Positions 10,301 to 37,905 of a stretch of 64,000 nt of DNA are shown here, one piece after another. Both the position numbers and the translations under genes were made by a program. The DNA is from Eutreptiella sp. 'Long Island Sound 2002' (Eukaryota; Protista; Euglenida). The stretch is from the NCBI GenBank assembly GCA_964036045.1, contig OZ038379.1:26536001-26600000 (forward strand), in the 5' to 3' direction. Below the pieces are notes generated by a model that was given only the letters and a program-made list of their open reading frames with translations, searched no databases and was not told the DNA's origin. How positions within the stretch are numbered: position 1 is the first letter of the stretch; each line of letters begins with the position of its first letter.

Positions 10301-11217
10301 CCAAAAAAGAACACACACATCAACAAGAAGATGCGCATGTTCTTTTACTGGGGAGGGGTTTACACAGACATTCCGAATCTCTATTACAAAGCCACTGAGG
10401 GACAAATGTATATTGAGGGGCAACGAAACCACAATCACATGAATCAGAGTAGCCTGTGCGCCTTCCATATCCATTTTTTATGCTCCTTTGCAATCTTTCG
10501 CGATTTTTCATGTCACCATCTGTGTAAGGTGAGGGAATGCTGCCAAAGGCCTGTCCCACACAACTGGTATCTTAGTACCATGAGTATGCGTCTTGTAATC
10601 CATATACAAGGGGAGTCCATACTGGATTCTCAGCCACCATACTTAACCTATCACAAACATGCTCACACAGTGGGCGGAGGCATCAGAAGGAAGAGGGTGG
10701 TAATGCAGGAGATTGCCCAACTTGGCATGCATGATCCCGTTGGTTGGTTGGGGGGCATCGGTGGTCAGGTTGCAGTGTCCGCATTAGGCTCCAGCTGCGC
10801 CTGCCCCACAGCTTTCATCACCTTCTGTCCATCGTGGTGCCTCCAGCGCATTCAGTCTCACCGGCATGTTCAGCGTGCTCCCTCCCCGAATGGTTGGGGT
10901 TGCGACCTTCAGGACTCTATTGAGTTAGGCGTGCATCCTGGTCAGTGGTCACTCCTTCACCAGGTGCTAGTGCTAGCTGGCTCCCATTTGGCCCTCCCCG
11001 GTTCCGGCTGGCTGTCGGTCCTTAGGTTGAAAACCCCAGTGGGTACAGGGTGTCGGTTAGGGTCGGTTAGGGGTCAATGCAATACATACAACATACAGCA
11101 AGGGATGGGGTTGGCCTCTGCACATGGCGCCTAGTATAGGAAAAAGCATAGATGTTACCTGGATATTCATCGATCATATCGATCATATCACCAAACCTAC
11201 GAATTTCGTGCCCCCCC

Positions 11218-11285
11218 CCCCCGGTATCGAACCTGGCATCTCCGGCCAGCGCTCGATCTCTTTAGCCACTATGCTATACCGACGA
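11218..11285 (-). other. tRNA-derived (SINE-head-like) sequence, unit 1
   Basis: Minus strand reads TAGCATAGTGG (A box) ... GGTTCGATACC (B box). Anticodon arm not canonical. Ends in a poly-G run. Confidence 0.6.
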
Positions 11286-11348
11286 GGTCTGATTTCCTGC
11301 CCCACAGGCAGAACAGGCGGGGCTGTCCCGCAGCATAGTGCATCCCAA

Positions 11349-11416
11349 CCCTCCCCGGGGTTCGAACCACCGCCTACGGAATGCGAGACCCGCCGCATAC
11401 CATTCATCTACAGGGA
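11349..11416 (-). other. tRNA-derived (SINE-head-like) sequence, unit 2
   Basis: TCCCTGTAGATGAATGG...GGGTCTCGCATTCCG...GGTTCGAACCCCGGGGA: partial acceptor stem, A and B boxes, imperfect anticodon loop. Confidence 0.6.
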
Positions 11417-11899
11417 CGATACCGACCGACGACATTCTGGGGGGCCGGGGGGGGGTGGGGGGGGGGGGGTGGAGCTGTGAAAAACCCAGTGGGTTCAGGC
11501 TGTAGGCTCGGACGTCAAGGCACACAACCGTTTCCACGGCTGGCAGGGGAGCTGGCAACACCAATCACGCCGGTAGCAGTGACTACGCCCTATTTTGTGG
11601 GAACCCGAAACACTTTCCAACCACCTGGGGGGCGTCGCCACTGACCCCCCCGGGTATCTATGCGGTTATTAGAATCCCTCAACCTGGCCCTCATGGACGA
11701 TGCAGAGGACCACAGCAGTGGTCCGACGACTCCCAGGTCAGAGGAATCCCATGAGTCTGCGGCCAGGACAGTGACCTGCAGCACAGAGGGTTCCAGATGT
11801 GCCACCCCGTGATCTGCAGATGATGGCAATGGAGGAGTTCCCCCGGTTTACCAACCGCCCCGACCAACCTCCCAACAAAACAGATCACGCCCCCCCTGC

Positions 11900-14216
11900 T
11901 GTATGTTGTGCACCGGTCCTTTGGCCATCATCTAGCCGTGGCGGCGCCATTTTTGCGCCCACCCCACCATACCATTGACAATCAGGAGGCAGTCTGGGCA
12001 GACCAACATGTACTCCTCTGGTCTGTTGCCCTCAAGGGCTTGGAGGGATGCTCTGAGTTCCCCCCTCATGTTTGTTTATTCTTCGTTCAGCGGGATGTGG
12101 GTGGCCGTATCAGGGGCATCCCCAAAAAACACCCCATATCCTCCCACCCTCTCCACCACCAGGTGATTTTCAGATGACCCATCCTGGTAGACAACTGTCC
12201 AGCCTTGTCGCTTATATTCTTTAGTCACCCGTGCATGTTCCGCCCTGAGCCCCTCTGCCTGATCGAACTTCTTCCGTTTCTTGGGCGGGCACCACAGTCG
12301 GAGGGGGGTTCAGGAGTTTGATACCGTGAGTCTTTGCAACACTGATATTCGTGGCATGGAGGTGAGGGCCTGAATGAACAGGGTGATTTGTGCTGCAGGC
12401 AACGTGCCCTCTGGCAGGTTTTCCCATTGCTGCAGGACCTTAATCCACATTGCCACGAAAAAATCCCATGACGGGTCCAGTGCTGCGTGCTATTTTTGGC
12501 CGCACACCTGACACCCTGACCGCCGTCCACAGTGCCAGGCCCAGGGGGGTGGTAAGGGACAGCTCTGGTTGGTTCCATAAGAGAGTTTTAATGTCCGTTG
12601 ACTGGCCATCCGGCGTGGTCGCCGGTCCCATGCATTGTGTAGCAATGTGTGCCGCCACCGGGATATACCTGCATGAGCACAGCGCGTGTTCGCTGGTTTC
12701 CTGCTGGCCATCCAACGGGCATTGGGCTGCCAGTTCGCCAGTCGGGTGCCCACTGTGAGCTTTTTCCACAACGCCTTTTGCATGAAAAGTTTGTCCTCTG
12801 GGGGGATGACCAGTTTGTCCCATGCTTTCCACACCTGCATTCCTTGCCGCGGTGGCTCGGGGGTCAGGGACGACAAAAACCTCAACTTGTGCCTGGTGTT
12901 CCATTCCATCTAGAAAATGGGGCTGGCTTCCTTTGGTCTCATTCGAGGTTTTCAAACACTCCCCTCAGCCCCTCAAAGCTGGGATTGTAGCCACTGCAGC
13001 GCTCACAAGGTTCTTGGAGTTCAGTATGTACAGTCAGAGGTGCATAATTGTTGGCTCTGTGGTGGCCTGCTCTGCCTGTGGTCTAATCCGTCCTGCTGCT
13101 CCCCCTACTTGTCCCCCTGTACCCTTGCTAAACCTAAGGTCAAAACAAGAGACAGGGCCCTAGAAGGCAGGGCCCTAAACAGCATATTCCCTCATCATGC
13201 TCTCATCTTCCTGATAAACATGTATATCCACCCTGGGCGACAAGACACCCTAGGCTGCGCCCGTGGCAAGACACGTGGCTCTTTTCCACTTGGATTGCCT
13301 GACGGAGGGGAGTGTCAGCAACAACGTGTAGAAAAAGTGTGTCGCATCCCCTGAAATGGGGTCACATGCATGGAATAATGTCTGCTGAAAGTGCCTCAGC
13401 ACTTCTGGCATCCCTGCAAACCAGATGTGTTAATAATCCCCATAGCCACATTTTAGTATATCTGACAAAATCTGCCCTGGGCGTCAGGACACCCTGGGCT
13501 GCGCCCGTGACAAGACGCGTGCTTCCTTTGGGGGCGGTGTGGCTGGCCGCTCTGCCGGCTGTGTCATTGCCAGCAACCCCAAAGAGTATATGTGCGTCCC
13601 CCGTCCATGTGCGCGGCAGGCAATCTTTCTGTGATATGGCCTGCGGCAGTTGACTGATGCTGTTGAGCCCCCCCCCCCCCCCCTGATAAGGGAGGGGTTG
13701 TAGTCCGTGTTTTTATGCGTATCTCTAAAGAGCGATGAGTGCCACGCCGGCATTTGGGGGAGGACTCATGCGGCGGCACCGGCACCACCGCTGGTCGCTT
13801 CATGAGGGAGAACGCTTTGCGTGACTAAAAAGTGATACGTTTTCCATGGGATCAGGCCGAGTTGCAGCCAGGGCAGGGGCGTGGGATTGTGTTTACTCCG
13901 TGCGATGCTGACCACGCCCTCATGTGTGCTCGGGACAAGCTGGGCACCGCGTTTGGTTCGTGTAAAAACTTCACAAATGCCGTTGTGTGCTGCCACATGA
14001 GGAAGGTGCGGGGCTGGGGTAGGTTGTTCCCTCCCTGCGCCGGCGTGTGGGCCAGGATGGGGAGGGTCAGGCCCCAGCTGTTGAGGCGTAGTGCCACCTT
14101 ATACACATTGGCCAATTTCGCCACTACACTGTCGGTGGGAAAATATGCCCGTGCCGGGAAAATAAGCAAAGGCAGTACCCACTCCTGAAATAGGGCTATG
14201 CGTTCGTCGTGTGTAA
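11900..14216 (-). mobile_element. 3' part of a LINE ORF2 (post-RT thumb, zf-RVT-like region, C-terminal RNase H), split from its 5' part by an insertion
   Basis: LTHDERIALFQEWVLPLLIFPARAYFP...GGNNLP (13.9-14.2 kb), WDKLVIPPEDKLFMQKALWKKLTVGTRL and CPLDGQQETSEHALCSC (12.65-12.85 kb), RNase H at 11.9-12.2 kb. Reading frame joins 16171+ after removing 14217-16170 and one TAA. Confidence 0.85.
11905..12195 (-). pseudogene. RNase H1-type domain at the LINE C-terminus (two in-frame stops)
   Basis: VVYQDGSS...GGYGVFFG...EE*TNMRGELRASLQAL...LVCPDCLLIVNGMVGWAQKWRRHG*MMAKGPVHN matches the RNase H1 pattern VYTDGS..GxGVxFG..QTNNRAEL..TDS..W..WKKxGW..G.PV.N. Confidence 0.85.
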
Positions 14217-19155: not shown

Positions 19156-20204
19156 TTGTACTTGGGGATGAACGGCTGCGGGCGATATATATCACATGGT
19201 GACATCGGAAGTGGATAACAGCAAAGCAGATAAGCGGAATCATATCGCTTAGCGTTCGAGGAGCTCTCGGAACGCATCCGCTCTTGAGGTGCAATACAAC
19301 GTCTAGCCCACAAAATAAACATGGCAAAATGGCACACAGCATTTTCTTCACGACTATGGGGGACAATGGGGCACGATAAGCAGCTGCTACGCCATTAGGA
19401 ATGCCCGAAAACGTTATTGAAATCAACCCTGACATCTTTCTGTGATGATGCACATATTGACACAGCCCGTCAGTTAGAGAAATAACCATCATCACCGTCA
19501 GCATCAGGCAGACCCAAATTGGGCAACCGCCAAACGTCATCCCAACGGTGGTAATCATGATGATATCGCCACCACATATTCTCCACCCAAAACTTCTCAA
19601 ACCGGGATCTCGCATGCTTTAGTCCCCCCTTGAACTCTGCAAACTCCAGCTCAGATTCAAACACAAAATGCTCCCAGGTGAACTCACTCCACGCTTCAGC
19701 AACCAAGCGCATTTTGGCCTTCGCCTTCAGAGGAAGGTACGACAAAATGAGCAGCACGACGTCACCGGGGACATCCCGTAACAGGTGTGCACTAACAGGA
19801 ACTTGCCATCCTTTGGCAATTGTGTTTCTTTTGAACGCAGGAGGGTTGTATCCAGGAATGGCGGCTGATGTGGGCCGTGATGGTAGGCTGCCAGCTTCTG
19901 CTCCTCAGCAGGTGTGAGCAAAACGGGACAACCACGCAGGGTTTTGAGGGTCGCCCCTCCGGTGCACGACAACCCCTGCCCTCAAGTTGTTCACTTCGTT
20001 CTCCATGGCAGCCATCATCAACTTCCACTCTTTCGCATGGGCCGACGGCAACTGCTTGATGCTATGCGCCGGATGACCCATGACACTGTTGCGGCACGGA
20101 GACCGGAAACCCATGACGTATCCCAAATGCCGCCACACCTGCAGCGGGGACAGCTGACGGACCGCCAGCAGTATCAGCGCGTCAAAGGGGTACGTCATGA
20201 CTAC
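19156..20204 (-). pseudogene. Exon encoding the C-terminal part of the Rnl1-type ligase followed by an F-box (in-frame stops at 19905-7 and 19470-2)
   Basis: Acceptor tcAG|GTA at 20205/20204. VVMTYPFDALILLAV continues YADNK of the previous exon (Rnl1 pattern YPENRIVVxY..LVLL). Same frame gives LLRDVPGDVVLLILSYLPLKAKAKMRLVAEAWSE (F-box, 19784-19680). Candidate donor GTGAGT at 19155. Confidence 0.7.
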
Positions 20205-20278
20205 CTGATTGACACGGTGGGCAACAGCATATTGCAAAGCCCCGCCTGATCAGACCATTGCAAACGAATACGGCCTTC

Positions 20279-20310
<32 letters not shown>
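20279..20310. repeat. (GT)n microsatellite just upstream of the 20204 acceptor
   Basis: gtgtgtgtgtgtgtgtgtgtgtgtgtgtgtg. Confidence 0.95.
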
Positions 20311-20312
<2 letters not shown>

Positions 20313-20519
20313 ACACTTGTGGACACTTGCGCACACTTGCTGACATGCCCATGGGTACCCTGCGAATATGATGGGCTGCATATTCTGCATGCTTCCAGAC
20401 GACAGCATGTCCTGAGGTGGGGCAGGCCACAGAGGTTGCATGCACATGTCATGGGTCATCCTGTGGTGGGCGATACATGCGGTACGGACGAGGAAGGCGA
20501 GGGCAGTGCACCTGATTGG

Positions 20520-20720
20520 TGAAAAATGTAAGTCGTGTACAAAAAAATCGTCCAGTCGTGTAATTTTTTTGAGGTAAATGCGTGTGATTTTTTCTTGCGG
20601 TAAGTCGTGTAAATTAAAAAAAAACTTGAATTTTTTTTTACGGTAAGTGCGTGTAATTCTTTTTCAGTAAGTGCGTGTAAATCATTAAAAAAATTGAAAA
20701 ATTGAAAGAAATGCAACTTT
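20520..20720. repeat. GTAAGTCGTGTAA/T-tract repeat element, short copy
   Basis: Repeated gtaagt(c/g)gtgtaa flanked by T and A runs; same family as 23430-23790. Confidence 0.7.
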
Positions 20721-21149
20721 TGCAATACATGCGGAATATGTACAGCTGCTGGTTCCGTACGGCACCCCATAGCGACCTTAACGATGAGACACCGAGTCCA
20801 CAAAGCACATAGTTCTCTGCGCGGCCACCAATCAGTTGGGACTTGGCCAATATAACATAGTTTCACATAGTGTCATTGGCACTAGACACAAAATCAGGCC
20901 CAAGAAAGAGTCTCGACAGGGCCATGGCCAACATCCAGTGTGCAAGCACTGGGAACAAAATCAAGCTCAAGAAAAAGAGTCGTGACAGGGCCATGGCCAA
21001 CGCTAGTGCCACCATTATAGGCCACCAAGGCACTCGTATGGGGCCAATATAACAGCAATCTTATACGCTTGGTACACCAAACGGGCGGAGGAAAATACAG
21101 CCCACAAAACATGCACCCGCTACAAGTAGTTGCAGAATGCATGCTTGTA

Positions 21150-23100
21150 GATCAAGTCCGTTTTTGTGTCGCTGGACTTGGGCTTTGCACCAGGATTGGG
21201 GTTAAGCTGACAAGCGGCGTGCAACTCCACTACTAGCTGCTTGGCCAGGTCATTGATGAAAAGCTGGTCACGCGCTCCATCTAGCCAGATGCATCTCCTG
21301 GGTAGCCATCCGGTACCTTGCGCCACTCTCCACGGATGAGGACCTTGGGACGGGTGTCCTCCTCTGTGGGAGTGGCCATGGAAGGTTGCAGCCTGGCCTC
21401 CGGGCTTTCCACGCTCTACTCGGTAGAGGCCTCCTTGCCTTCGAGTGGGGTGGGGGTGGCCTAAACACTCTCCTTGATCGCCGAAAGTGCACCTTCAACT
21501 TGGGTGCTTGGGGGGGGCTCAGGAGGGCAAGGAAGCTCGGTCACACCCTCCACATCATCACCGACCCATACTGCACGATCAACATTAACAATGCTGAGCA
21601 CATAGTGCACAAAAACGGCACCCATTGGGACGAGGGGCACATTGGAAAGGGAACCTCAATGCTCCACCACCAGCTTCGCGATGTTCAAGCTTTGAAAACC
21701 ACAAGACCAACTGTCCGTTTGGAATCCCAAGGCGCGGTGCTTGGTGGTTAGCGAAAGCTTCTTCATGGCCATCAAGAAAGGATGGATCAAATGAGTGGAG
21801 CTTAGGGGTTCCCAAACCCAAATAGTGAAAAGCTCCAACCAGACACGACAATCGAAGGCACACGCAAACCACTGCAACCCTTCCATGTCATTGGAATTAA
21901 GCACAAAAATGTGGGGACGGTTCATTGATTTCCATGTGGCGGACCTCTTGGTTCAACCAACACAAGATATCCTTGCCCGTCAACCAATCTCCCACCCCCA
22001 AGGGGTTGTTTCGCTCAGGATGGTGCTTCATGTACACCTTTGGGAAGTGGGAGGGTCGACAGGGGGTGCAATTGGCAAGGCCTTCTTTCCCTTCAACTTC
22101 GGGGGGGTGCTTGGCAAGGCTTTCTTTCCCTTCACCTTCCGGGGGGCACTTGGCAAGGCCTTCTTTCCCTTCACCTTCTTCTTTGGCACAGGGGCTGTAG
22201 GGGGAGGCGCAAAGAGGTCCGCCTCCGAATCAGATGACTGAACCTCTTTTTTCTTCACCTCCTTACCTGGGGGAGAGGCCAAAAGAGGATGAGAAAAGAT
22301 GTCCAACTCGTCGTCACTGGACACGGCTTCGTTAGGGAGGGTGGCGGTCAAAACCTCCTCAACGTCTACCTCCTGACACCACTTTTTAAAGAGCCACTTG
22401 TCCGTGTTAGGGTGGGCCCTTCCACGAACTGGACACTCCAAAGTGTGTGGGCAAAAGCCACACCTCTCACAATGCATGCACCACAAGTACACAGTCTTGT
22501 GACATTGGCCAGACACATATGGTGGCCAAAAGAGATTAAGGAAATGCTATATCCTCCGATGCACCTCCATGGGTGAAGCAATAGTAATAGACTTAGACTC
22601 ACCATCGCTGGGTGGGTTCAGAGCAAGCGGAGAGACATTAGCGTCACTATTGGTATCGCTACCGGCCACCACCTTCCTGCGGCTTTTTGCAAGTGCCCTT
22701 TTCTGGGGGACTGCAAGTTTTTGTGAGTGGTGGGTACGAACCTTTCTTGATGGATCCGCACGTGCAGTCACCTTGCATTCAATACGGCCCAACTTAAAGA
22801 GGCGTTGGGCGACAATCTCCCAAGAGTATTGAGAGGGTACCTTAAAATTCGGTTCTTTACGAGAAGCCATAGCAACACACCCTCACACATCGCGAACGTG
22901 CAATAGTTTGCACAAGTACAACCATCCGCTGTCACACGGTGGATGCGGAGAAAGGCTACAAATACCTCCCACGTACTTGAGGTCCCTTCCTCAATCTTAC
23001 ACAACGTGGCTTTCCATGCGGCCACGGCAGCACCATCAATGGGCCGATACTCCTTAATGGGTTGTCCGTTGAAGCCTCATTTTTTTTAGGAATCCCCTTG
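21150..23100 (-). mobile_element. Decayed Mutator-like (MULE) transposase C-terminal region: SWIM finger, low-complexity KGKKALP repeats, Ulp1-like protease
   Basis: ADGCTCANYCTFAMCEGVLLW (SWIM-like CxC..C, about 22880-22925), Cys-rich QCHKTVYLWCMHCERCGFCPH, three 30-bp KGKKALP repeats (22070-22170), then EGLQWFACAFDCR...WEPL...FQTDSWSCG (His/Asp/Gln-Cys order of C48 peptidases, His mutated to Gln). Confidence 0.65.
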
Positions 23101-23429
23101 GTCAAAAAACAGGGCATCGCCATCATTGAAAAATGCATGTGCCATATGCAACGCTTGGCTCTCCTGCCACATCCACGGCTCGGGTTGAGGGGCATGTCCA
23201 GAGGTCGGAAATGCTATGTCACCCCTGCATTCTCGGGGGTCCCCAAACAAAGGGGGACAAAATCAGAAGTGGCTGCCTCACCCCTGCCTTCTCGGGGGCC
23301 AAGAAGAGGGCGGAAGTGCTACGTCACCTCTGCATTCTTGGGGGTCCCCAACGCCAAGCGCGGGAACAAAATCAGAAGTGGCCCACATGTGGGCACATCG
23401 CCTAAAGGCATGCATTTTCAGTCAAATTG

Positions 23430-23790
23430 GTAATTGTTTCTTTGCAGTAACGTCGTGCAATTGTTTTTTTTTTGCGGTAAACGCGTGTAACAAAAAAACG
23501 TCACATCGTGTAATTTTTGTTTGCGGTAAGTCGTGTAATTTTTTTTGCGGTAAATGTGTGTAACAAAAAAAATCGTCACGTCGTGCAATTTTTTTGCGGT
23601 AAACGCGTGTACAAAAAAATCATCAAGTTGTGTAACTTTTTTTTGCAGTAAACGTGTGTGCAAAAAAATCATCAATACGTGCAATTTCTTTTTTGCGGTA
23701 ATGCGCGTGACGGGCTTACACGACTTACCGCAAAAAAAAATTACACGACTAGACGATTTTTTTGTTACAGGCATCTACGGCAAAAAAAAA
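23430..23790. repeat. Imperfect tandem/inverted array of TTTTGCGGTAAACGCGTGTA-AAAAAAA units (MITE-like)
   Basis: About 8 forward units, then an inverted unit ttacacgacttaccgcaaaaaaaa at about 23715-23740. Confidence 0.75.
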
Positions 23791-23815
23791 ATTTCAGGAA
23801 TTACAACATACACAC

Positions 23816-24607
23816 CTTATTGTCGGCATACATAGCCTCTAACACGTACGTGTGGCCCTCCAAAAGCCGCGCCCCGGCCGCCTGCAGCCACGCCCTGGCC
23901 CACTTCGCCTGCACAGAGTCGTGCCACCGCCGGGTGTTGGTGCACAGGCGTCCCTGCCACACGTTTGCAACGATCATGCTGCCGTCCGTCTTCACGGTGC
24001 AGGAGTATAGCTCAGGGCCCTCGACCAGTGGGCTTGCCGAGCTGCGAACACGCTGGTCGCGCCGGTCGCGTGCATGCCGGTCCAGGCTCTGAGATTGAGA
24101 GCTTAACGATCCCGTTTGGCGGGAATCCATAGCCGCGAAACATGCAAAGGGGGTTGCAACAACTTGTCCGCTGGGCGGGTGGAGCATGAGGCCGCAGGCA
24201 ATGTTGTGCGGATCGTCCTCCGGGTTGTCCGAGGGGCAACTGAACACCTCAACACCGGATGCAGCATTGCAGCTCCGCTGCACTCTGAGAATGAACGTGA
24301 GGTACGCGTAGAGCTTTGGGAAAAGGATGCGCTTCGCGCAATGCACGCAACCCGGCGCGTTGCTGGCGAGGCTCGAGGCGGGGCCCGCGCCGAGCGTAGG
24401 AGGCGGCTGCAAGAGATAATCGAGTTTGATCGGTTGCAAACAGCTGCTGAGCTGCGCCTTGATGGTCTCAAAGGCGTCGGGCTTGAGCTTGTTGTAGCGC
24501 ATGCGTTGGAACCGCAGGACAAATCGCTTGCACGCGAACTCTTTGCACAAAAACATGCAAACCGCGAGGCCTCCATGAGAGAAATCCATGCACTCGGCAT
24601 ACTCCAC
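23816..24607 (-). CDS. Open 264-codon exon: capping-enzyme OB-fold C-terminal domain fused to T4 Rnl1-type RNA ligase N-terminal half
   Basis: Long pyrimidine tract + cAG|GTG acceptor (24608/24607) and AAG|GTGTGT donor (23816/23815), both phase 0. aa 1-66 VEYAEC...RFQRMRYNKLKPDAFETIKAQLSSCLQPIKLDYLL resembles the capping C-domain (VEC..W.F.R.R.DK..PN..T...SI..P). Then IACGLMLHPPSGQVVATPFACF, motif I KTDGS (Lys codon 23992-23990), TRRWHDSVQAKWARAWL and TYVLEAMYADNK, all Rnl1-like. Confidence 0.85.
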
Positions 24608-26067
24608 CTGCGGGAAGGAGGGGATAGGGGAGCGGGATGAGGGACGATGGGAGGGAGAGGCGCCGGACGGGGGAGGGGGTTAACGACCGAAAAACTATTT
24701 TTGCTTGGTGACAGTGGGACAGTTGTCCTGCTACCTACAGCCTCTGCTCCTTGGTGTCCCTGCCATGCCAGCGCCGGCAGGCTACACACAGAGCCTTCCC
24801 AAGACAGAGGAGTCTGGAGGGTGCTCACTACCACTGATGTGACACGGGGGGTGGGGGGACTGAATTGCCAAGAAGCAGACCGAGAAATGCTCTTCCAGGC
24901 ATACTGCGCTTGCTTTCGGCAGTTGCAGTGAAGCGCAAGCTGCAAACTCACGGCTCAGGCAAACCAAGCTATGTTCCTGCGCCGCATGGGAAGCCCCAAA
25001 GCACCTCAGCAAAGAAAGGCACTGGCCATCCCAGTAGTGTGGCAGCAGTAGAATTGCTGCATGCCACGGAGGGTGATAAGTGCGCTCAAAACGTCACCCC
25101 AATGAATCGACATATGTGACTGAGGAGGGGGTAGGGGTGCGGAGAGGATGTGTGCCCGGGAGGGGGATACAAAGGCGTTTGGGGGAAGGGGGGGTCTAAT
25201 CCCGTCTCCATCTGGTTGCTGCGGGTCCTATCAGGCTGTGAAACTCCGAGAAATTCACAGTGTCTGTGGTCGTTGCGCTATGCCCTGGGGCGACAATTTG
25301 GCCCACAGTTTGGGGGTTCATGGCGTGGAATGCGGCACGCAGAATCGCACATACCCGTACAGAGCTGCGGGTACTGAGTGTATTCAAGTGTGCGTGCCCC
25401 GCCTGTCCAGCCGCACCCAGTCATACCCGGGGGCCCGGGCTTCGGAGAGTACAACAGTGCCCTTCCCAATCAGTTGTAGGATGGCAGCCCCCTATGAACC
25501 TGCACAACAACAACCACAGGTCTGCCGCGTCTCTACTCGTCTGTTTCTCTGACTCAGTGTACACAACTGCACGCAGCTGCCATGGTCCACCGTACGCAAC
25601 TGTGCGCAGCCAGAAAATCCAACGGTGCGCACCCGTACAACCACACGTCTGGTCTGCACGCTTTGAAGGACCGCACAGAAAAGCGTTGTCGCCTCCGCAC
25701 CACATCCCCAACCCTCAAAACACAAACCCAAATCCAAACCCATGCCCCCCAACAACTCTTTTGTGTTGGAGGGGTGGAAAAGAGACACTTTTGGTCAGAA
25801 TGTTTACCAGTGCACTACCAAAGTTCCCCCAAAGTAAGATAGTCATATCTTCGGTCTATGGTTCAGTTTTAGGTTGGTTCTTTTTGCATCTAAAAACCCT
25901 TTTCCTTGCTCAACAAAGTGTCCAACCCAAAGCTGTGTCGTGGGTGCTAGACACTACCTACTAAATCCGGACCCCGAGCCCCGGAACCCAAGCCCACAAA
26001 CTCACACCAAATCCCAGAGGCCGCGATGCTCTGGGCCCAACACACACACCACACGTCTCGGGCAGAC

Positions 26068-26724
26068 CTGCAGCGTAAATCCAAAGCTCAACCGAAAATT
26101 GCGCAGGGTCTCGGCGTCGAGATCGAACGTGACCTCCTGGGGGCTCTGGAGCTTGAATACTGGAAGGGCCGCATCGAACGCGTGGTACGAGTCCGGCGTC
26201 GAGACAAAGTCAGCTGCGAAGCCGGCGTCCTCTGCGCGTGGGAGGGCGCGGGCGTGGCGGAGTGGGACGTGCTGCTTGATGCGCAGCATCGGCGGGAGCG
26301 CAGCCACAATGCACTGGCGTGTCGTCAGCGTGCGCCGCCACACAGGCTCGCCGCGCAGTGCCAGCACATCAAAGACCAGGAAGGCGCCATCAGGCATCAG
26401 CTCAGCATCCAACACGGTCTGGGAGGGCAAAGCACAGGAGCACGCACACACCACCCCGTCGCGCGTCATCGTGTAGCAATTGTTGCTGCCTCTGAGGCTA
26501 ATGATCCAAACGCACGTCCTGTCGGCCTTGAGGCTGACAAAGTAGCGGTTGAGCTGCACAAACGTCACGTCACCGGGTTGAAGAGGAATGGGCATAACAA
26601 ACCGCGGGTCATGGACCTGCAGTAGACGCTGCAAGCTCTTCTAAATGATGCGACCCTTAGATGGCCCCAATGGCCACGCCGGGGATAAAGAATTGGCGAA
26701 CATCTCCTGGATGACCTCCACCAC
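26068..26724 (-). pseudogene. Exon encoding an mRNA-capping guanylyltransferase nucleotidyltransferase domain (TAG at 26643-26641; motif I KADR)
   Basis: PRFVMPIPL..YFVSLKADRT (motif I, Lys 26529-26527), TVLDAELM (III), FLVFDVLALRGEPV (IIIa), AADFVSTPDSY (IV-like), VFKLQSPQEVTFDL (V). Acceptor tgcAG|GTG at 26725/26724 and donor CAG|GTC at 26068/26067, both phase 0. Confidence 0.8.
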
Positions 26725-26780
26725 CTGCACAGAATGAGAAGGCAGACAGGGGCCTTGGGTGCTGAGGGGCAGCACACAAC

Positions 26781-26849
26781 TTCTCCTTTTCGCTCGTTCG
26801 CGGTCAGCGTGATAAACTGAACGTCCCGCCGACAGACACTTTCAGCCAT
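26781..26849 (-). CDS. Possible small upstream exon (MAESVCRRDVQFITLTANERKGE) of the capping/ligase gene
   Basis: ATG at 26849. GAA|GT donor at 26781/26780 gives a 56-nt phase-0 GT-AG intron into the 26724 exon. No homology support. Confidence 0.35.
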
Positions 26850-27049
26850 TAGTTCTCAGGTCCAGTGGGGGAATGTTTGCCCAGCGCGCACCCGGCGCGC
26901 TACTTTTCTATGAACTATGCCGACTTCAGCCCCAGATGTACCCTCTCATGGAAAAGCCCCCCAAATAAACGTTGCACTGCACACCTTCCCTACAAAGCAC
27001 ATTGCATAATAAAGCAATATCTGTGAATGCAGTAACTCCAACTGTCATC

Positions 27050-27320
27050 TGTATTGTATCTAACAAACAACATTGGTCCCACAAGTGTGGGTGTCAATAC
27101 ATTCAGTACAATAGTGCTCCTGACACTCATCACAAACTGCAACGGTGGAGCGCTTCTGGCAACACAACATACACACTTCTGCCGCGTCCTCTGCCTCATC
27201 TTGCGTGGCGGCCGAGTTGCTTTGGTCAATCCAAACATGAGGCGGGACATGCTCCCATGGTCCGTAGGGGGGGTGACAGACTTGCCTCCAAATGCAAAAT
27301 TGTGTAAAATGCAACAAAAT
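27050..27320 (-). mobile_element. C-terminal tail of a Harbinger transposase with a B-box-like zinc finger
   Basis: LHFTQFCIWRQVCHPPYGPWEHVP is homologous to LHLQQFLIRRQVRYPPYGPWGHVP, which follows the DDE core at 36.3 kb. Ends VCMLCCQKRSTVAVCDECQEHYCTECIDTHTC. Confidence 0.7.
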
Positions 27321-27344
27321 TCGGACTGACTCGAGGGGCTATGC

Positions 27345-27645
27345 AAAAAAGCGTGGATTGTGAGTCCCTAACCCCAACTCGAGGGCCACGCAAAAAAGCG
27401 TGGATTGCGAGTCCCTAACCCCAACTCAAGAGGCCACGCAACAAAGTGTGGATTGTGAGTCCCTAACCCCAAATCGAGGGGCCACGCAACAAAGCGTGGA
27501 TTGCAAGTCCCTAACCCCAACTCAAGAGGCCACGCAACAAAGTGTGGATTGTGAGTCTCTAACCCCAATTCGAGGGGCCACGCAACAAAGTGTGGATTGT
27601 GAGTCCCTAACCCCAACTCAAGAGGCCACGCAACAAAGCGTGGAT
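27345..27645 (+). repeat. 48-bp tandem repeat, about 6 copies
   Basis: Unit aaagcgtggattgtgagtccctaaccccaactcgaggggccacgcaac (16-aa period in the ORF track); same unit at 36600-36725. Confidence 0.95.
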
Positions 27646-28364
27646 TCAGAGATTGTCCCGGTTTCCTCAATAGCACCGGAAGGTTGGGCCCCAAAAGAGG
27701 GCAGAAATGCTTCGTCACCCCACGGGGGGGGGCGTAGCAACGGGCCATACGCCGACTCCCTCCCACTCTCGGACCACTTTCAGGGCGGGGGGGGGGGGGG
27801 GCTGGGTCTAGGGGGGGGAAGGGGGGCTGCCAAGAAGGGGGGGGGGGGGGCTGGGTCTGGGGGGGGGGAAGGGGGGCTGCCAAGAAGGGGGGGGGTTTAG
27901 GTTTAGGTTTAGCGTGGCCGTGCGATATTGGCTCACCCATGGGGTGGCCTCACGCCTGGACGGTAGGAGAGCGGCCGCCGTCAATCACTAGAGGAGGTCT
28001 GGCACCCGCAGACCCCTCCACGCGATGTGGGTTTTGGGCAGCCGCTCGCGTGCTCCGCGTCGCTGTCGCATCGTTGCCGTGTGGCCCGCGCTAGGGCTGG
28101 GCCCTGGGGTTGGGTGTCTCCTTGTGGGGGAACCCCACGCCGGATCCCTCGTGGCGGGTCCGCATGGAGGACGCCCTCCTGCTGGTGTCCCAGCCGCGGC
28201 CACCCCGTCCCCAGGCCACTGGTGGGGTTTCGGCGGATGCCCTCCTTCTCCCACCGCCGTATGCCATAGCCTTGGTGCTGCGGCCACCCCACTGTAGGCC
28301 GCTTTTAGCGGCTTGCATGCAGCACTCCCCGCGCTGCAGTCTGTTGTGTGCAGTCTGCACTCTA

Positions 28365-28930
28365 CTGCTCACTGCAGCAGTACCCCAGTCCCGTTACCAA
28401 TCTAGGGACTATTGAGGCTCTACAGCCAAAGTGCAGCAGCCTCATGGCTGCACTATTCATGCTGCAGCCGCTGCTGCACTCACTGCAGCAGTACCCCAGT
28501 CCCGTTACCAATCTAGGGACTATTGGGGCTCTACAGCCAAAGTGCAGCAGCCTCATGGCTGCACTATTCATGCTGCAGCCGCTGCTGCACTCACTGCAGC
28601 AGTACCCCAGTCCCGTTACCAATCAGGGACTACTGGGGCTCTGCAGCCAAAGTGCAGCAGCATCGTGGCTGCACTGTTCATGCCGCAGGTGGTGCTGCAC
28701 TCACTGCACTGGTGCGGCAGCACTTGGGCAGTCTCTGCTCTACTGCTTGCCCCTGTCCCGTTACCAATCTAGGGACTATGGGGGCCTTGCAGCCGGCGTG
28801 GTGCTGCCCTCTGGCTGCAGTCCGTGCAGTGCAGCATGTGGGCAGTAACTGCACTAGTGCAGCGGCACATGGGCAGTCACTTGCATGCCCCCGTCCCGTT
28901 ACCAATCGAGGGACTATGGGGGCCCTGCTG
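28365..28930 (+). repeat. 117-bp tandem repeat, about 3 conserved and 2 decayed copies
   Basis: Anchor ccccagtcccgttaccaatctagggact recurs at about 28383, 28496, 28607, 28755 and 28893; 39-aa period in ORF 28348-28848. Confidence 0.9.
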
Positions 28931-29449
28931 CAAACGTTCGTTTAGCGCACTGCGTTGGGCTCGTGTGTGGCGCGCTCTGCGTGGGGCTCTTGTCGCATGC
29001 GTGTGGTCTGCTTCATGTGTCGCGTCGCGCTTGGGTGTACACTTCAGCGGCTCCGAAGACGCCTTCCTTGCACGGTGAGCGCTGGCTCAGCACTGGACGC
29101 CCAGCACTTTTGGCTCTACGTACCCACCATGTTGGCATGGTGCCGCCCGCCGTGGGGGTTGGGACCACTCGCTGGGCAGGGTGCCACTTGTGTGGTTCGC
29201 GTGGCTGCTTTTTTTGTTTTGTCTTTTGTGATTGTGGCCTCCCGGGTCCTGTTTTGGTAGGACTCTTGAGCGGGCCCTTGTGCACACAGACGCCTGTGTG
29301 CTCGGTTTCCTCGCTCCGGGAGGGCGACGGACGCCCGTCTCATCCCCGAGGCTGAGCCTGCTCGGGGGAGGGTGCCTCCCGTTAGCCGTGCGGACGCCCG
29401 CTGGGAGGGTGACACCGGGGGAAGGGGGGGGGGGGGAGGCTTCATCGTG

Positions 29450-29790
29450 GCGCACAGATGCGAGTCACAAAGTGTCTGCATGGCGTTCAAATGCGAGTCC
29501 CAGAGCGCCCGCATAGCGCGCAGATGCCAGTCATAGAGCGCCTGCAGGGCACACCGCTGCAAGTCACAGAGCGCGTGCAGATGCCAGTCACAGAGCGCCT
29601 ACAGGGCGCACAGATACACTTCACAGAGCGCTTGTATGGCACACCGCTGCAAGTCACAGAGCGCGTGCATGGCGCAAAGAAGCGGGTCACAGGGTGCCTG
29701 CATAGCGCACAGATGCGAGCGACAGAGCGCCTGCATGGCGTTCAAATGCGCCTCCCGGAGTGCCTGCATGGCACACGCATGCCCTGACAA
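29450..29790 (+). repeat. About 30-bp minisatellite, about 11 decayed copies
   Basis: Unit gtcacagagcgcctgcatggcgcacagatgc; 10-aa period (VTERLHGAQM-like) in ORF 29458-29787. Confidence 0.85.
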
Positions 29791-29977
29791 ATATGGCATA
29801 AGAATTGGATGCCTAACCCCTGCCTTCTGGGAGGCCCACAAGTGGGCGGAAATGCTACATCACCCTTGCTTTCTCGGGGATCCCCAACAAAGGGGACACA
29901 GTCAAAGCAAAATGAACAGAAACAAAAATTTTCCCATGGCATCCCTAGCCCTGCGTGCAGTCCTACAGATTGCCTCC

Positions 29978-30045
29978 AGTGGAGGTTTGAACCCAGGATA
30001 CCGCAATCGCAGGGGCACTGCTTTACCCACTAGGGTATGGCCCAT
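29978..30045 (-). other. tRNA-derived (SINE-head-like) sequence
   Basis: Minus strand TACCCTAGTGG (A-box-like) ... CCTGGGTTCAAACC (B box). No canonical anticodon arm. Confidence 0.5.
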
Positions 30046-31208
30046 CTCTGATATACCTCTACACAGGGGTGGTATTGATATTTGGTCCAATTTGGTTTTC
30101 ATCCACCATTGGGTTCTCCTAAAAAAACTGAGTAGTTTGAGTATAGACACATGGGGTGAAAACCCATTTTTTCACTCTACTAAGTCAAGCAAAAATTCCT
30201 TAGGGCGCCTTTGGCGCCCATGGTCCAGCACTTCCGGGCCAAAACCCAGCAGGGAGGGGGAGGGGGGGGAGTCGGCGTAAAGGGTCCGGTCCCAGCGCCC
30301 CCCCCCCGTGCGTCACCCCTGCATTCTCGGGGGTCCCCAACAAAGGGGACAAAATCAGAAGTCAAAACCTCCGCTAGGGGTCACCATGATGCTCCTAGTA
30401 TCTCAAAGTATGGGTCTCTAGTACAGCCAGACGCCCAAACAGCTGCACTGCGCTAAGTGCGCCCCCTTAGTGCACCCCCTAGAAGGCCACCGGTGGGGCA
30501 CGGGTGACAAAAGATGCCCGGCGCGCGCCCGGCGCACTAACGTTCCCCCAGTGGTGTGTGCGCTTGATACAAACTGCTTCACTTCTGCGGCATATGAAGA
30601 ATGGGATTGCGTCTGCAAGCAGCCAAAGTTGTTGATTTGGTTTAACGACAGCTCTCATACACACTGCTTGTGTCCGACCACTACTGGCTGCACCGTGATG
30701 AAGCCACATCAGTAGACACTACTTCGGCCATAGTTTATCCGAGGCTTCTTTTTCTCCGGTGGGAGCAGGTCCAGGTCCAGGGAAGCCCTCTTACCAGGTG
30801 GTACTGGAGAAAACTTTTGGAATCAAGGATCAGAGTTGTCCGATGCGACCACTGTCCCACAAAGCAATGTGGTAGCGGACGTAACACGCAGTGAGGAAGG
30901 GATAAATCTGATTCCAGCAAAAGCAGTGGGAACAGCCACACCCGTAGGCATCCCAGTGTGCTGTAGGCAAAGCTGGCCTAATCAACGATCCAATGTGTAT
31001 TAGGTCATACATATTACATCTAATGCGTGTATTATCCGCCTTGTCAACACTGTGCACAGTTTGGAGACACTGTGCACATACCCGTCTACTGGTGCGCAGC
31101 CTGTAGACACTGTGCACACCTGGAGTATAACACGCACATGTCGTAGACGCTGCACACATGTCATAGACGCAAACAAGTAATATTACGGAGAGGGCGCGAA
31201 GCGAAGCC

Positions 31209-31950
31209 CCCGGGGGGGGGGGGGGGATTGCGGTTACCCAAGCCTGAAAAAATTGTGGTAAAATTGCGGTAAATTGTGGTAAATTGCGGTAAAATTGCAG
31301 TAAAAATTGCGGTACATTTCTTTTCGGTCCCCAGACTCTATGCCAGCCATGAGCAGCAGTGGAGCACAGGACTTTTTGCAAAAAGGTTTTTTTGACCAAT
31401 TATGCACCCAATTGGTAGGATAGTGAGGCTTTCAGCACATAGCATGCACACTGCACCAAAGCTTTCAGCACAAGCAGCTAATCCAACCATCCTTCCACGT
31501 CACCATTATAATGGGCCATGAAAGCCACACAATGGGCATTGTCGCTCATTGAATACCTCTGATCCGTGTCAGTATATTTGCAAAACGAAACGAACCGCTC
31601 CACAGAGCCAGTTCCCACACCATGCAAACGCGAAATCTGTGTGGCATAGCGTGCCTTTTGGCCACCCTGTCCTTTGCCAGGTTTCACTGGCCTTTTACCA
31701 TTGCCGGAATCACTGTCCCCAGAGTGGATGACATTTTGGGAACACAAAAACAGAAGGGCGTCCCGCCACACAAATGACATGCAGGACAGATGAGAACACA
31801 TACACGTACAGTGCGCCTAGTAACAGCGAAGGTAGGGAAAGAATTTTCCTCAGGGGAAAAATGAAATTTTTGAATAGAGGCATCACTGAAAAATTGCAGT
31901 AAAATTGCGGTCAATTGCGGTCAATTGCGGACCGCAATCCCCCCCCCAGG
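31209..31950. mobile_element. TIR-bounded non-autonomous element carrying a hAT-like dimerisation-domain remnant
   Basis: CC(C/T)G(n)ATTGCGGT at about 31209-31233 and ACCGCAATC(n)AGG at 31931-31950. Subterminal AAATTGCGGT repeats at both ends. Minus-strand interior GSVERFVSFCKYTDTDQRYSMSDNAHCVAFMAHYN resembles hAT C-terminal SxERxFS...R.S...A.M..YN. No 8-bp TSD seen. Confidence 0.55.
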
Positions 31951-33328
31951 AAGCAAAAAGGGTGGAATAGGTCCGTTTACCTGTTGAGTAAGCGTATTAA
32001 ATGTAATACGTATTCGGTGACACGTATTAGATCGTGTAGTAGGCCAGCCCTGGCTGAGGGCACCAGAAAGACCGAAGGCGGAGAAAAAACAGCCACGTGC
32101 GATGCACAGCGAAAAAGCTCAGTTTAGTATGGCGACCACCGTGGGGTTGGTAACGCTGAGGATGGCCAACCCTGCTTGCCCCCAGGCGAGGGGCCTGACA
32201 GGAGGCACGTGCGGTGCGACCGCGATCCGCAGTCCGTGCATTTCGTTCGCGAGAGGACCACGGGATGGCGCACAGGCAGTGGTCAGGCCCAGCAGGACGG
32301 TCATGCATGGTCGGGACGGAGAGGACGGCAGGAAATCATGCTGCTTCAGTCGTCGTGAGATGCGCGAAGCAACGACAGCCCTGGACAAATCAGCCCCGTG
32401 CCAAGCCGGTCTCACAGCGCGCGGCGCAGGGGGGGGGGGGGTTGGCACAAGGCCTTGGTGGTTGGCTCTGTTAGCCTGTGGCGGCGCCTATCGGCCTCTC
32501 GCCCTTGAACCTTCTGCCATGACAAGCAGGCATCCGTACTACTGCGGGCATCCGCACTGCTGCGGGCATCCACCGGCATGGGTGGGAATCCAGAATGCAA
32601 CTTCTGCCCATGGCGTCCTCCCCTGACGGCCTGATCAGTGCCCGGTATGCGGTCATCACGAAGACCCCAGGCTGGGAGGTGCTCACCACAGCCAGCAACG
32701 TGAATGTCACACTAGGCCATGGGTGCTAGCTCACCAATGTGTGCCTTGCTGGTAGTGCGTTGCAGTATATCTTCTGCGCTCTGCGCCATTCATGGCGAGC
32801 GCGTTGCAGAAATATCTTCACTAAGAGTATTCGCACTCTGTGCACAGCGGAGTATCTTCTTTGCTGGCGGTAGTGAGCAGCCCCGCCCACCAACACGCCC
32901 CACAAGGGGCGGGGTTTGGCACAAGGCCTTGGTGGTTGGCTCTGTTACACAACGGGGGGGGGGGGGGACCATTCCGCCAACCGCTTCTGTCCGACGTGAA
33001 CGGCTCACTAATATTTTTGCTGCAACCGGATCTTGCCCACCGACCCCTTTCAGCGACCGGTTTGGCAACCACTTTTGCATCGCCCCCCCCCCCCCTGCCT
33101 GCTGCCCTCTCAAGGACATCCCCAATCGGACGTCTGCGCTCACCTACAGTCGAGCCGCACCCACCCCCTTTCCCCTCTCCACCAACAAGATGATAATGGA
33201 ATAGAATATGGAATGCAATGCACCAGAGAATGGAGCGCTGTTTGATGCACCACAACTGCAAGCAAGTCACCAGGGACCAAAGCCTCCTTCCGGTGATGCA
33301 CGCAGTGTGAGGACGAACAGGCAGTCAC

Positions 33329-33883
33329 CTGATCCACTGACAAGGAAGACGAGATGTGCCGCCCTCCGACAACGTGCATGACGTGGTCCATCTCCGGAGA
33401 TCCGGAACGTCTCCGCCAGGCATCAATCCGTCTATCGAGATCACCATCAGTCCGGCAGCGCTTGCGCATCCTCTGCTGAATGTCTTCAAGGGACCCTGCA
33501 AGAATCTGAAGGAGGATCACCCGCGGAAGAGCCTCATAAAGTCGTAACACGAATTGAGGCGTGAAATTGCCAGCAATGGTCACGAACTGATGGCCCGACT
33601 CCGCTTTGAGCGCCTGGACTACGAAGTCCTTGGATTCGAGAACGCGACCAGTGCGACGCATTTGGTCGCCGAAAGACGCGTGTGAGAACTTGTTTGGATA
33701 ATCTGCAGCGAGTGCCTGTCCCAGGGTTGTCTTTCCAGAGTCCGGAGAGCCCAGGATCAGAACGAGACATGGTAGGCACTCGGTGTCCGTGAGGGATAAG
33801 TCTGCAAAGTCACGCGTCAAAGATGACAGCCCTTCGTCTGCTGGTCCGCCGAGATAAACGCTATGCGCAACGCTCTGGGCCAT
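33329..33883 (-). CDS. Divergent adenylate/UMP-CMP kinase-like P-loop protein, first exon
   Basis: LVLILGSPDSGKTTLGQALAADYPNKFSHASFGDQMRR follows the NMP-kinase pattern ILGxPGSGKGT...F.HLSxGDLLR. Later IQQRMRKR..RTDGDLDRRI. ATG at 33883 behind an acceptor-like ctattttcAG (about 33909). Phase-0 donor CAG|GTGACT at 33329/33328; a possible 73-nt intron leads to LWCIKQRSIL. Confidence 0.7.
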
Positions 33884-36725: not shown

Positions 36726-37905
36726 TGGATTCAAAGATTGTCCCGGTTTCCTCCATAGCACCGGAAGGTTGGGGCCCAAAAGAGGGCGGAAATGCTACGT
36801 CACCCCTGCATTCTCGGGGGTCCCCAAAAGAAGGGGAACAAAATCAGAAGTCAAAACCTAGGCCAAGGGTCACCATGATGCACCACGCAACAAAGCGTGG
36901 ATTCAAAGATTGTCCCGGTTTCCTCAATAGCACCGGAAGGTTGGGGCCCAAAAGAGGGCGGAAATGCTACGTCACCCCTGCATTCTCAGGGGTCCCCAAA
37001 AGAAGGGGAACAAAATCAGAAGTCAAAACCTAGGCCAAGGGTAACCATCATGCACCACGCAACAAAGCGTGGATTCAAAGATTGTCCCGGTTTCCTCAAT
37101 AGCACCGGAAGGTTGGGGCCCAAAAGAGGGCGGAAATGCTACGTCACCCCTGCATTCTCGGGGGTCCCCAAAAGAAGGGGAACAAAATCAGAAGTCAAAA
37201 CCTAGGCCAAGGGTCACCATGATGCACCACGCAACAAAGCGTGGATTCAAAGATTGTCCCGGTTTCCTCAATAGCACCGGAAGGTTGGGGCCCAAAAGAG
37301 GGCGGAAATGCTACGTCACCCCTGCATTCTCAGGGGTCCCCAAAAGAAGGGGAACAAAATCAGAAGTCAAAACCTAGGCCAAGGGTCACCATCATGCACC
37401 ACGCAACAAAGCGTGGATTCAAAGATTGTCCCGGTTTCCTCAATAGCACCGGAAGGTTGGGGCCCAAAAGAGGGCGGAAATGCTACGTCACCCCTGCATT
37501 CTCGGGGGTCCCCAAAAGAAGGGGAACAAAATCAGAAGTCAAAACCTAGGCCAAGGGTCACCATCATGCACCACGCAACAAAGCGTGGATTCAAAGATTG
37601 TCCCGGTTTCCTCAATAGCACCGGAAGGTTGGGGCCCAAAAGAGGGCGGAAATGCTACGTCACCCCTGCATTCTCGGGGGTCCCCAAAAGAAGGGGAACA
37701 AAATCAGAAGTCAAAACCTAGGCCAAGGGTCACCATGATGCACCACGCAACAAAGCGTGGATTCAAAGATTGTCCCGGTTTCCTCAATAGCACCGGAAGG
37801 TTGGGGCCCAAAAGAGGGCGGAAATGCTACGTCACCCCTGCATTCTCGGGGGTCCCCAAAAGAAGGGGAACAAAATCAGAAGTCAAATCCTACGCTAGGG
37901 GTCAC
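36721..37905 (+). repeat. 172-bp tandem array, 7 copies (last partial)
   Basis: Units start at 36721, 36893, 37065, 37237, 37409, 37581 and 37753; near-identical ORFs recur at 172-bp multiples in the ORF track. Confidence 0.97.

Follow-up and report, generated by a model that had tools for sequence, protein, structure and literature searches.

The question raised by this locus is whether it encodes a working enzyme that caps and joins RNA. It lies in a stretch of 64,000 nucleotides (the window, positions 26,536,001 to 26,600,000 of contig OZ038379.1, assembly GCA_964036045.1) from the photosynthetic protist Eutreptiella sp. 'Long Island Sound 2002'. The original prediction placed there, between positions 19156 and 26849, a spliced gene fusing an mRNA-capping guanylyltransferase (GTase) to a T4 Rnl1-type RNA ligase and an F-box. 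It was found that the architecture is conserved and uncharacterised, a variant of known RNA-repair and recapping enzymes, and that the copy in the window is, judged by its sequence, catalytically disabled. With moderate confidence, the locus is regarded as one long, intron-split gene of a conserved algal protein family, running on the minus strand over about 14.4 kb from 33883 to 19470.

Open frames were observed on the minus strand at 26640-26005 (212 codons), 24679-23804 (292 codons), 20249-19908 (114 codons) and, past a single TGA, 19904-19473 (144 codons). The three GT-AG exons of the original prediction were borne out at their inner borders, where all splice sites are consensus and in phase 0: the exon 1 donor (CAG/GTCTGC, 26068/26067), the exon 2 acceptor (CCGCAG/GTG, 24608/24607), the exon 2 donor (AAG/GTGTGT, 23816/23815) and the exon 3 acceptor (ATCAG/GTA, 20205/20204). 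Both joins align with the family without gaps. The spliced model matches positions 3-300 of the family GTase+OB profile (E 5e-34), unbroken over the exon 1/2 junction, and the exon 2/3 join gives the DNQIVMEY stretch of the relatives. The outer limits had to be revised. Exon 1 had been started at 26724, and an in-frame TAG was found inside it at 26641-26643 (minus strand); the open frame begins at 26640, and this TAG may be the AG of an acceptor for an exon beginning at that position. Exon 3, taken to be open from 20204, is interrupted by an in-frame TGA at 19907-19905.

Within this revised model, exon 1 (26068-26640, minus strand, as are all features below) covers motifs I to V of the capping nucleotidyltransferase (NTase). 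The predicted GTase-side motifs were found in place, namely KADR at 26529-26518, LDAEL, FLVFD and FKLQ; motif I (KADRTC, 26529-26512) is degenerate and motif IV is without its DG. Exon 2 (23816-24607) encodes the capping OB fold followed by the N-terminal half of the ligase. It carries motif VI (RMRYNKLKPD, 24505-24476) together with the ligase landmarks ACGL (for CRGL), VVATPF, KTDGS (23992-23978), TNTRRW and TYVLEA, which confirms that the junction between the two enzymes lies in one open exon. The ligase-side motifs continue with TYVLEAMYADNK and then VVMTY..LLAV, as predicted. The first part of exon 3 (19908-20204) holds the ligase motif IIIa region (VVMTYPFDALILLAV), directly followed by a post-ligase helical region (RQLSPLQVW..). 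The TGA (19905-19907) falls in a poorly conserved linker, and its context, TGC TGA, fits a change from CGA to TGA. The C-terminal module (19470-19904) shows a P..GY.PP.F..T.AKGW motif, an F-box-like helix pair (LLILSYLP..RLV, about 19772-19668) and a tail; the stop codon of the gene is at 19472-19470.

In order to place these exons in a family, four hidden Markov model (HMM) profiles, named KIN, NT, LIG and CT, were built from the homologues of exon 2 and their cluster mates. All four matched the 64-kb window collinearly on the minus strand, in the order KIN, NT, OB+LIG and CT. The KIN profile matched at 33946-33143 (E 5e-11) and the NT profile at 26640-26005 (E 3e-27). The frame at 24679-23804 matched positions 227-300 of the combined NTase and OB profile (NTOB) and positions 5-139 of LIG (E 1e-36), so that the N-terminal part of exon 2 corresponds to the capping C-domain, as had been claimed. 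A short ligase piece was matched at 20249-19908 (E about 3e-4 to 1e-3), and the CT profile matched at 19904-19473 (E 3e-11). The spliced model aligned to positions 5-155 of the 241 in LIG (E 3e-46).

The kinase match had been absent from the original prediction, and its addition, together with the long repeat-filled introns, corrects the gene model. The exon (33143-33883, its 3' boundary provisional) encodes an adenylate-kinase-like (AAA_33) P-loop domain with a candidate ATG start (MAQSV..) and the Walker A sequence GSPDSGKT, in agreement with the nature of the N-terminal module of the family. It matches NCBIfam adenylate kinase (E 2e-4), aligns over its full length with the kinases of relatives P0086 and L001, and is matched in translated searches (tblastn) by the N-termini of P0007, P0009, P0010, P0014 and P0016 at 33883-33143. 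Between it and the GTase exon lies a repeat-rich gap of about 6.5 kb (26644-33142) with repetitive open reading frames (ORFs), presumed to be one or more long introns; a six-frame HMM scan of this gap revealed no further family modules. Tandem arrays were noted at 27371-27949, 28365-28622, 29100-29860 and 36880-37780, that is, both inside and beyond this presumed intron, and they yield long repetitive minus-strand ORFs with units such as ..PLELGLGTHNPHFVAW...

The distance of 6.5 kb leaves room for another view, in which the kinase ORF (33.9-33.1 kb) belongs to a gene of its own or is a remnant, and only GTase, ligase and F-box are transcribed as one unit. The intervening repeats speak for it, and the splice joining the kinase to the GTase exon is predicted only, with the 5' boundary of the GTase exon not fixed. 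Against this, in P0086, P0039 and P0124 the kinase is fused directly to the N-terminus of the GTase in one ORF, L001 shows an equally split layout over a short distance, and the modules of the window are collinear on the same strand. A separate kinase gene is considered rather unlikely.

The domain assignments rest on the family profiles, as the single exons of the window were nearly silent in Pfam, NCBIfam and PDB sequence searches. Exon 1 alone reached PF01331 with an E-value of 1.3e-3, under the cut-off, the ligase and F-box pieces alone gave no Pfam match, and the PDB sequence searches with single exons gave none either; it was the family profiles that resolved the domains. Language-model neighbours in the ESM-atlas were PF01331/snurportin clusters for exon 1 (0.95) and PF09511 Rnl1 clusters for exon 2 (0.96). 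The family GTase+OB profile matched the capping enzymes Cgt1 (Candida), Ceg1 (yeast), Pce1 (S. pombe) and those of human and PBCV-1 with E-values of 2e-28 to 1e-19, in alignments extending through the OB fold and motif VI, in contrast to E 4e-3 or worse for DNA ligases. By profile comparison, and in agreement with the top Foldseek hits, the GTase module is a capping enzyme and not a DNA ligase, as the claimed capping NTase and OB fold require.

The ligase is of the Rnl1 type, as claimed: its family profile matched residues 34-267 of T4 Rnl1 (E 3.5e-24), and PF09511 was found in 20 of 32 family members. The window ligase keeps the motif I lysine (KTDGS) and the motif III glutamate (TYVLEA) but is without motifs IV and V. 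The F-box holds at the level of the family, where PF12937 was found in 17 and PF00646 in 13 of 23 C-terminal modules and the top PDB matches were all F-box proteins; the window piece, a putative F-box, matches the family module but has no Pfam match of its own. Family proteins end in a conserved G-Y-G-S-x tail behind an acidic stretch, and the window ends in ..DDGYFSN (19490-19473), with GYFSN at this place. The intron-less metagenomic member P0092 (962 residues) was modelled with AlphaFold (predicted local distance difference test, pLDDT, 77; predicted template modelling score, pTM, 0.78). In Foldseek searches with this model, capping enzymes ranked first, followed by T4 Rnl1, ligase domains of Trl1 and adenylate kinase.

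Searched exhaustively with HMMER, exon 2 gave 98 representative homologues. The census with the four profiles counted 26 (KIN), 60 (NT), 107 (LIG) and 58 (CT) proteins, many of them with the collinear arrangement of kinase, GTase, ligase and C-terminal module, and at least 25 proteins combine a P-loop with two KxDG motifs. Members include Volvox XP_002959528, Gonium KXZ47387, Tetrabaena PNH03221, several proteins of Edaphochlamys (among them KAG2488438), proteins of Haematococcus and Pleodorina, a EukProt entry of the cryptophyte Rhodomonas, transcripts from MMETSP, and Pelagophyceae sp. CCMP2097 with kinase and GTase only. The closest named relative of the window GTase exon is from the pelagophyte. 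On many metagenome contigs the whole protein is a single ORF of 1100-1300 residues, for instance P0039 and P0124 (contig L004). Two other fragment matches, P0012 and P0017, stem from other samples and not from the genome of the window. The source databases name these proteins "hypothetical protein", "adenylate kinase family enzyme", "F-box domain-containing protein" or "mRNA capping enzyme adenylation domain-containing protein".

The combination of GTase, Rnl1 and F-box had been put forward as unknown. No published description of a kinase-GTase-Rnl1-F-box protein was found in the searchable literature, one likely domain survey not being covered, and in this respect the claim stands; as an arrangement of domains it is common in public protein sets, under hypothetical or automatic names. 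Across 22 full-length members the P-loop and the catalytic motifs of both NTases are invariant or nearly so, and the family enzymes are probably active.

Some of these relatives were viewed in their surroundings. The 88-kb JGI metagenome contig L004 encodes the complete four-module protein of 1183 residues in one ORF (10001-13552), and its neighbours are densely packed genes without Pfam matches, including one for a protein of 4226 residues; this contig could derive from a giant virus or from a compact protist genome. A viral origin of the four-module gene was unsupported by the IMG/VR viral contigs, among which only stand-alone Rnl1 relatives were found. In Pelagophyceae sp. CCMP2097 (MU657171.1, L003:8001-9431) the gene comprises kinase and GTase/OB only, a layout like that of the trypanosomal enzyme TbCe1, and neither a ligase nor an F-box was found within 8 kb of it.

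In order to evaluate whether the window copy could share the activity of the family, its residues were compared with those of its nearest relatives (P0002, P0003, P0004 and P0086) and of 22 further members, in the numbering of P0092. Only the window copy departs at the catalytic positions listed here. In GTase motif I, KxDGxR has become KADRTC (G255R, R257C) with the lysine retained; KADR, which had been offered as a capping motif, is thus a degenerate motif I rather than a variant, the relatives all having KxDGxR. In motif IV, G384 is deleted and F387 is serine (AD-FVSTP versus TDGLVFTP). In motif VI, RxDK..N has become RYNK..D (D437N), that is, RYNKLKPD versus R[FY]DK..PN. In the ligase, two invariant arginines are changed, that of CRGL to cysteine (R525C) and the last of TRRR to tryptophan (R582W), and E676, G677, W678 and K689 are deleted, which removes motif IV (EGWV) and the lysine of motif V. 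The P-loop, GTase motifs III and IIIa, ligase motif III and both motif I lysines (KADR, KTDGS) are retained. Motif V of the GTase reads K-W-Q in the family, not K-x-K.

The missing part of the ligase, about 87 residues, has its junction at about 20160/20159. As the flanking sequences (..LLAV/RQLSP..) are contiguous in the DNA, and ligase profile positions 157-241, with motifs IV and V, were found nowhere in the 64-kb window by the family HMM scan, about 87 codons have been deleted here from the genome itself, with the frame preserved. Each of the six disabling point changes, the TGA included, could have arisen by a CpG transition in this CpG-depleted genome.

The stretch 19450-25449 of the window was compared with contigs from four public runs. 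X1 and X3 are two samples of the same organism and X8 is a low-coverage third. Runs X1 to X3 were recognized as DNA since the intron is present in them as fully as the exon, and X4 and X8 are likewise DNA, at low coverage and with essentially the same sequence. The in-frame TGA at 19907-19905 is identical in the independent DNA runs X1, X3 and X8, and these showed 0 differences to the window over 19450-20270 and 23758-25449, so that the TGA is not an assembly error. The only RNA-labelled runs listed for the organism, X5 to X7, are very small, with about 4 million letters each, and contained a fraction of 0.00 of the sampled words.

What such a copy represents was then weighed. An active bifunctional enzyme, as originally proposed, would require that the spliced product caps and ligates RNA and that KADR and a shortened ligase are tolerated. 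The intact P-loop, the two motif I lysines and the retained GTase motifs III and IIIa and ligase motif III are in its favour. However, the glycine and arginine of GTase motif I, the DG of motif IV and the aspartate of motif VI are altered and ligase motifs IV and V are absent, all at positions that vary little or not at all among 22 to 32 family members and in the close relatives, and the product carries an in-frame stop. In covalent nucleotidyltransferases the altered motif positions are needed for nucleotidyl transfer, a requirement that reportedly goes back to mutational work of the Shuman laboratory. Activity of the window copy is thus very improbable, and it is not to be presented as a working enzyme, since both active sites lack the residues of the relatives and half of the ligase core is gone. 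The favoured reading, in which we place an intermediate degree of trust, is a decaying duplicate, that is, a young pseudogene that would presumably have lost its expression. The in-frame TGA, the deletion that guts the core of the ligase fold, the CpG mutation spectrum and the introns swollen by high-copy repeats all point to decay. No transcript-derived protein holding this locus was found in the databases searched, and a word-indexed search with exon 2 gave only the ORF of the window itself.

Several observations weigh against decay. The frames named above are long and unbroken, without a clear frameshift, and neither deletion shifts the frame. At sites on which three close relatives agree, the window has the shared residue in 81% of cases, compared with 79-86% among the relatives themselves. 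The ratio of observed to expected CpG is about 1.0 in exons 1 and 2, against 0.59-0.68 in the introns and 0.67 in the whole window, and the GC content of the exons is above that of their surroundings; the genome looks CpG-depleted (perhaps methylated) with the coding exons spared. Past the TGA, the F-box and the C-terminal tail are still family-like. Together they are consistent with a gene that selection still maintains in a non-catalytic role. In addition, a short in-frame intron could excise the TGA, as in the NCBI model of the pelagophyte relative (L003), where an annotated short intron hides an in-frame stop of its own, and the only RNA-labelled runs are very small. An expressed pseudoenzyme is accordingly a possible, though less probable, alternative to the decaying duplicate. 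The gene would be transcribed and spliced with such a short intron, and its product, with a kinase-like domain, a dead capping fold that binds caps or RNA 5' ends, a ligase stump and a working F-box, would serve as a non-catalytic substrate adaptor or regulator of an SCF ubiquitin ligase. Snurportin-1 uses a capping-enzyme fold to bind the m3G cap, and the exon 1 neighbours in the atlas include snurportin m3G-cap-binding clusters, with snurportin also among the PDB matches of the family profile. On the other hand, the loss of about 87 residues from the NTase core of the ligase should leave an unfoldable domain, every disabling change belongs to the most frequent class of mutation, and the proposal relies on a predicted transcript only; among 130 in-frame GT/GC-AG intron candidates around the TGA none stands out. 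A compensating frameshift pair around the TGA, suggested by a frame-2 stretch like the ..ILTAYH.. of P0002, received no support from BLAST and was dropped.

The two introns inside the GTase-ligase part differ in content. Apart from a repeat at about 24650-24850, intron 1 (24608-26067, GT..AG) is single copy. Intron 2 (20205-23815, GT..AG) contains a high-copy, DNA-transposon-like insertion of roughly 3.3 kb, and its read depth is 1e3 to 1e6, versus 22-41 in the exons. The insertion (20450-23850) has subterminal inverted repeats at 20539-20570 and 23734-23765, 97% complementary, and T-rich units of about 25 nucleotides. Its appearance is that of a DNA transposon inserted into an intron that already existed, near the donor site. 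An Ulp1-like protease was considered for this intron and is unsupported, as the ORFs inside it gave no match in Pfam.

A paralogue fragment was found on another contig of the same assembly (L085:7929-8348; ENA ERZ25074135, ctg8978), in one ORF that spans only GTase motif V through the OB fold. It has no intron at the position of intron 1 in the window, and since its ORF is contiguous over the exon 1/2 point, it directly links what intron 1 splits in the window. Its motif VI is canonical (RYDKVKPN versus RYNKLKPD in the window). No other family modules were found within 8 kb on either side, and the fragment is either another relic or part of a gene with very long introns.

Pairs of a kinase with a ligase (Pnkp/Rnl1, Trl1) and of a kinase with a capping enzyme (TbCe1) are known, and the family can be compared with each. 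Like T4 Rnl1 with T4 Pnkp and the baculovirus and bacterial kinase-phosphatase-ligase fusions, which act by healing and sealing, it couples an Rnl1-type ligase to a P-loop kinase; unlike them, it has no phosphatase or cyclic phosphodiesterase (CPDase), the capping enzyme stands between kinase and ligase, and an F-box follows. Trl1, the fungal and plant tRNA ligase (ligase-kinase-CPDase), likewise combines an Rnl1-family adenylyltransferase with a P-loop kinase in one multi-domain protein of eukaryotes, whereas in the family the kinase comes first, the CPDase is missing, and GTase and F-box are additional. With the capping guanylyltransferases (Cgt1, Ceg1, human RNGTT, PBCV-1 A103R) it shares an NTase with an OB fold and motifs I, III, IIIa, IV, V and VI in this order, but not their triphosphatase or methyltransferase partners, and in the window motifs I, IV and VI are mutated. 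The m3G-cap-binding domain of snurportin-1, a neighbour in the atlas and in PDB, is a capping NTase fold that lost catalysis and was kept as a cap binder. This relation is weak and at profile level only (E about 1e-2); by analogy, snurportin-1 may illustrate which function is left to a copy without catalysis.

The cytoplasmic recapping enzyme TbCe1 of Trypanosoma brucei carries an N-terminal RNA kinase and a guanylyltransferase and converts pRNA to GpppRNA (PMC11417388). In the family, too, a P-loop kinase stands directly N-terminal to the capping guanylyltransferase. The nearest ESM-atlas cluster of P0086, the pelagophyte kinase+GTase protein, is a Euglenozoan 'RNA guanylyltransferase' with AAA_17 and PF01331 (0.94), which is a lead and not an alignment, and a profile search for TbCe1-like relatives gave matches dominated by P-loop words. 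In contrast to the family, TbCe1 is without Rnl1 ligase and F-box, and the window copy differs from it in lacking the catalytic motifs.

The family order is P-loop kinase, mRNA-capping guanylyltransferase (NTase and OB fold), T4 Rnl1-type ligase and F-box with GYGS tail. If they work as TbCe1, T4 Pnkp/Rnl1 and Trl1 do, intact members would phosphorylate the 5' end of a broken or decapped RNA and then either cap the phosphorylated end, by transfer of GMP from the lysine adduct to ppRNA, or seal it to a 3'-OH through the lysine-AMP pathway. Through its F-box, the enzyme would be attached to an SCF ubiquitin ligase. The role in recapping and end joining claimed for the locus is thus, for intact members, a fair inference from analogy, strengthened by the N-terminal kinase, which recalls TbCe1 (PMC11417388); it does not extend to the window copy, which lacks the catalytic residues and half of the ligase core. 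A speculative reading, to which a low probability is assigned, takes the whole family for a three-enzyme machine for the repair of RNA 5' ends, in which the kinase makes pRNA or ppRNA, the GTase recaps and Rnl1 seals, all wired to SCF through the F-box, and the window copy for a selected, expressed pseudoenzyme whose dead capping fold reads the cap or 5' end. If true, the window would encode an F-box adaptor that senses RNA ends, descends from a repair enzyme and leads RNA-bound targets to SCF.

The window locus is of smaller value; it shows the decay of such a gene or its turn into a non-enzyme. The family itself, with its catalytic motifs intact in volvocine algae, Haematococcus, a pelagophyte and many metagenome contigs, would offer direct access to the recapping and repair of mRNA in the algal cytoplasm, and to a connection that may exist between the repair of RNA ends and ubiquitin signalling.

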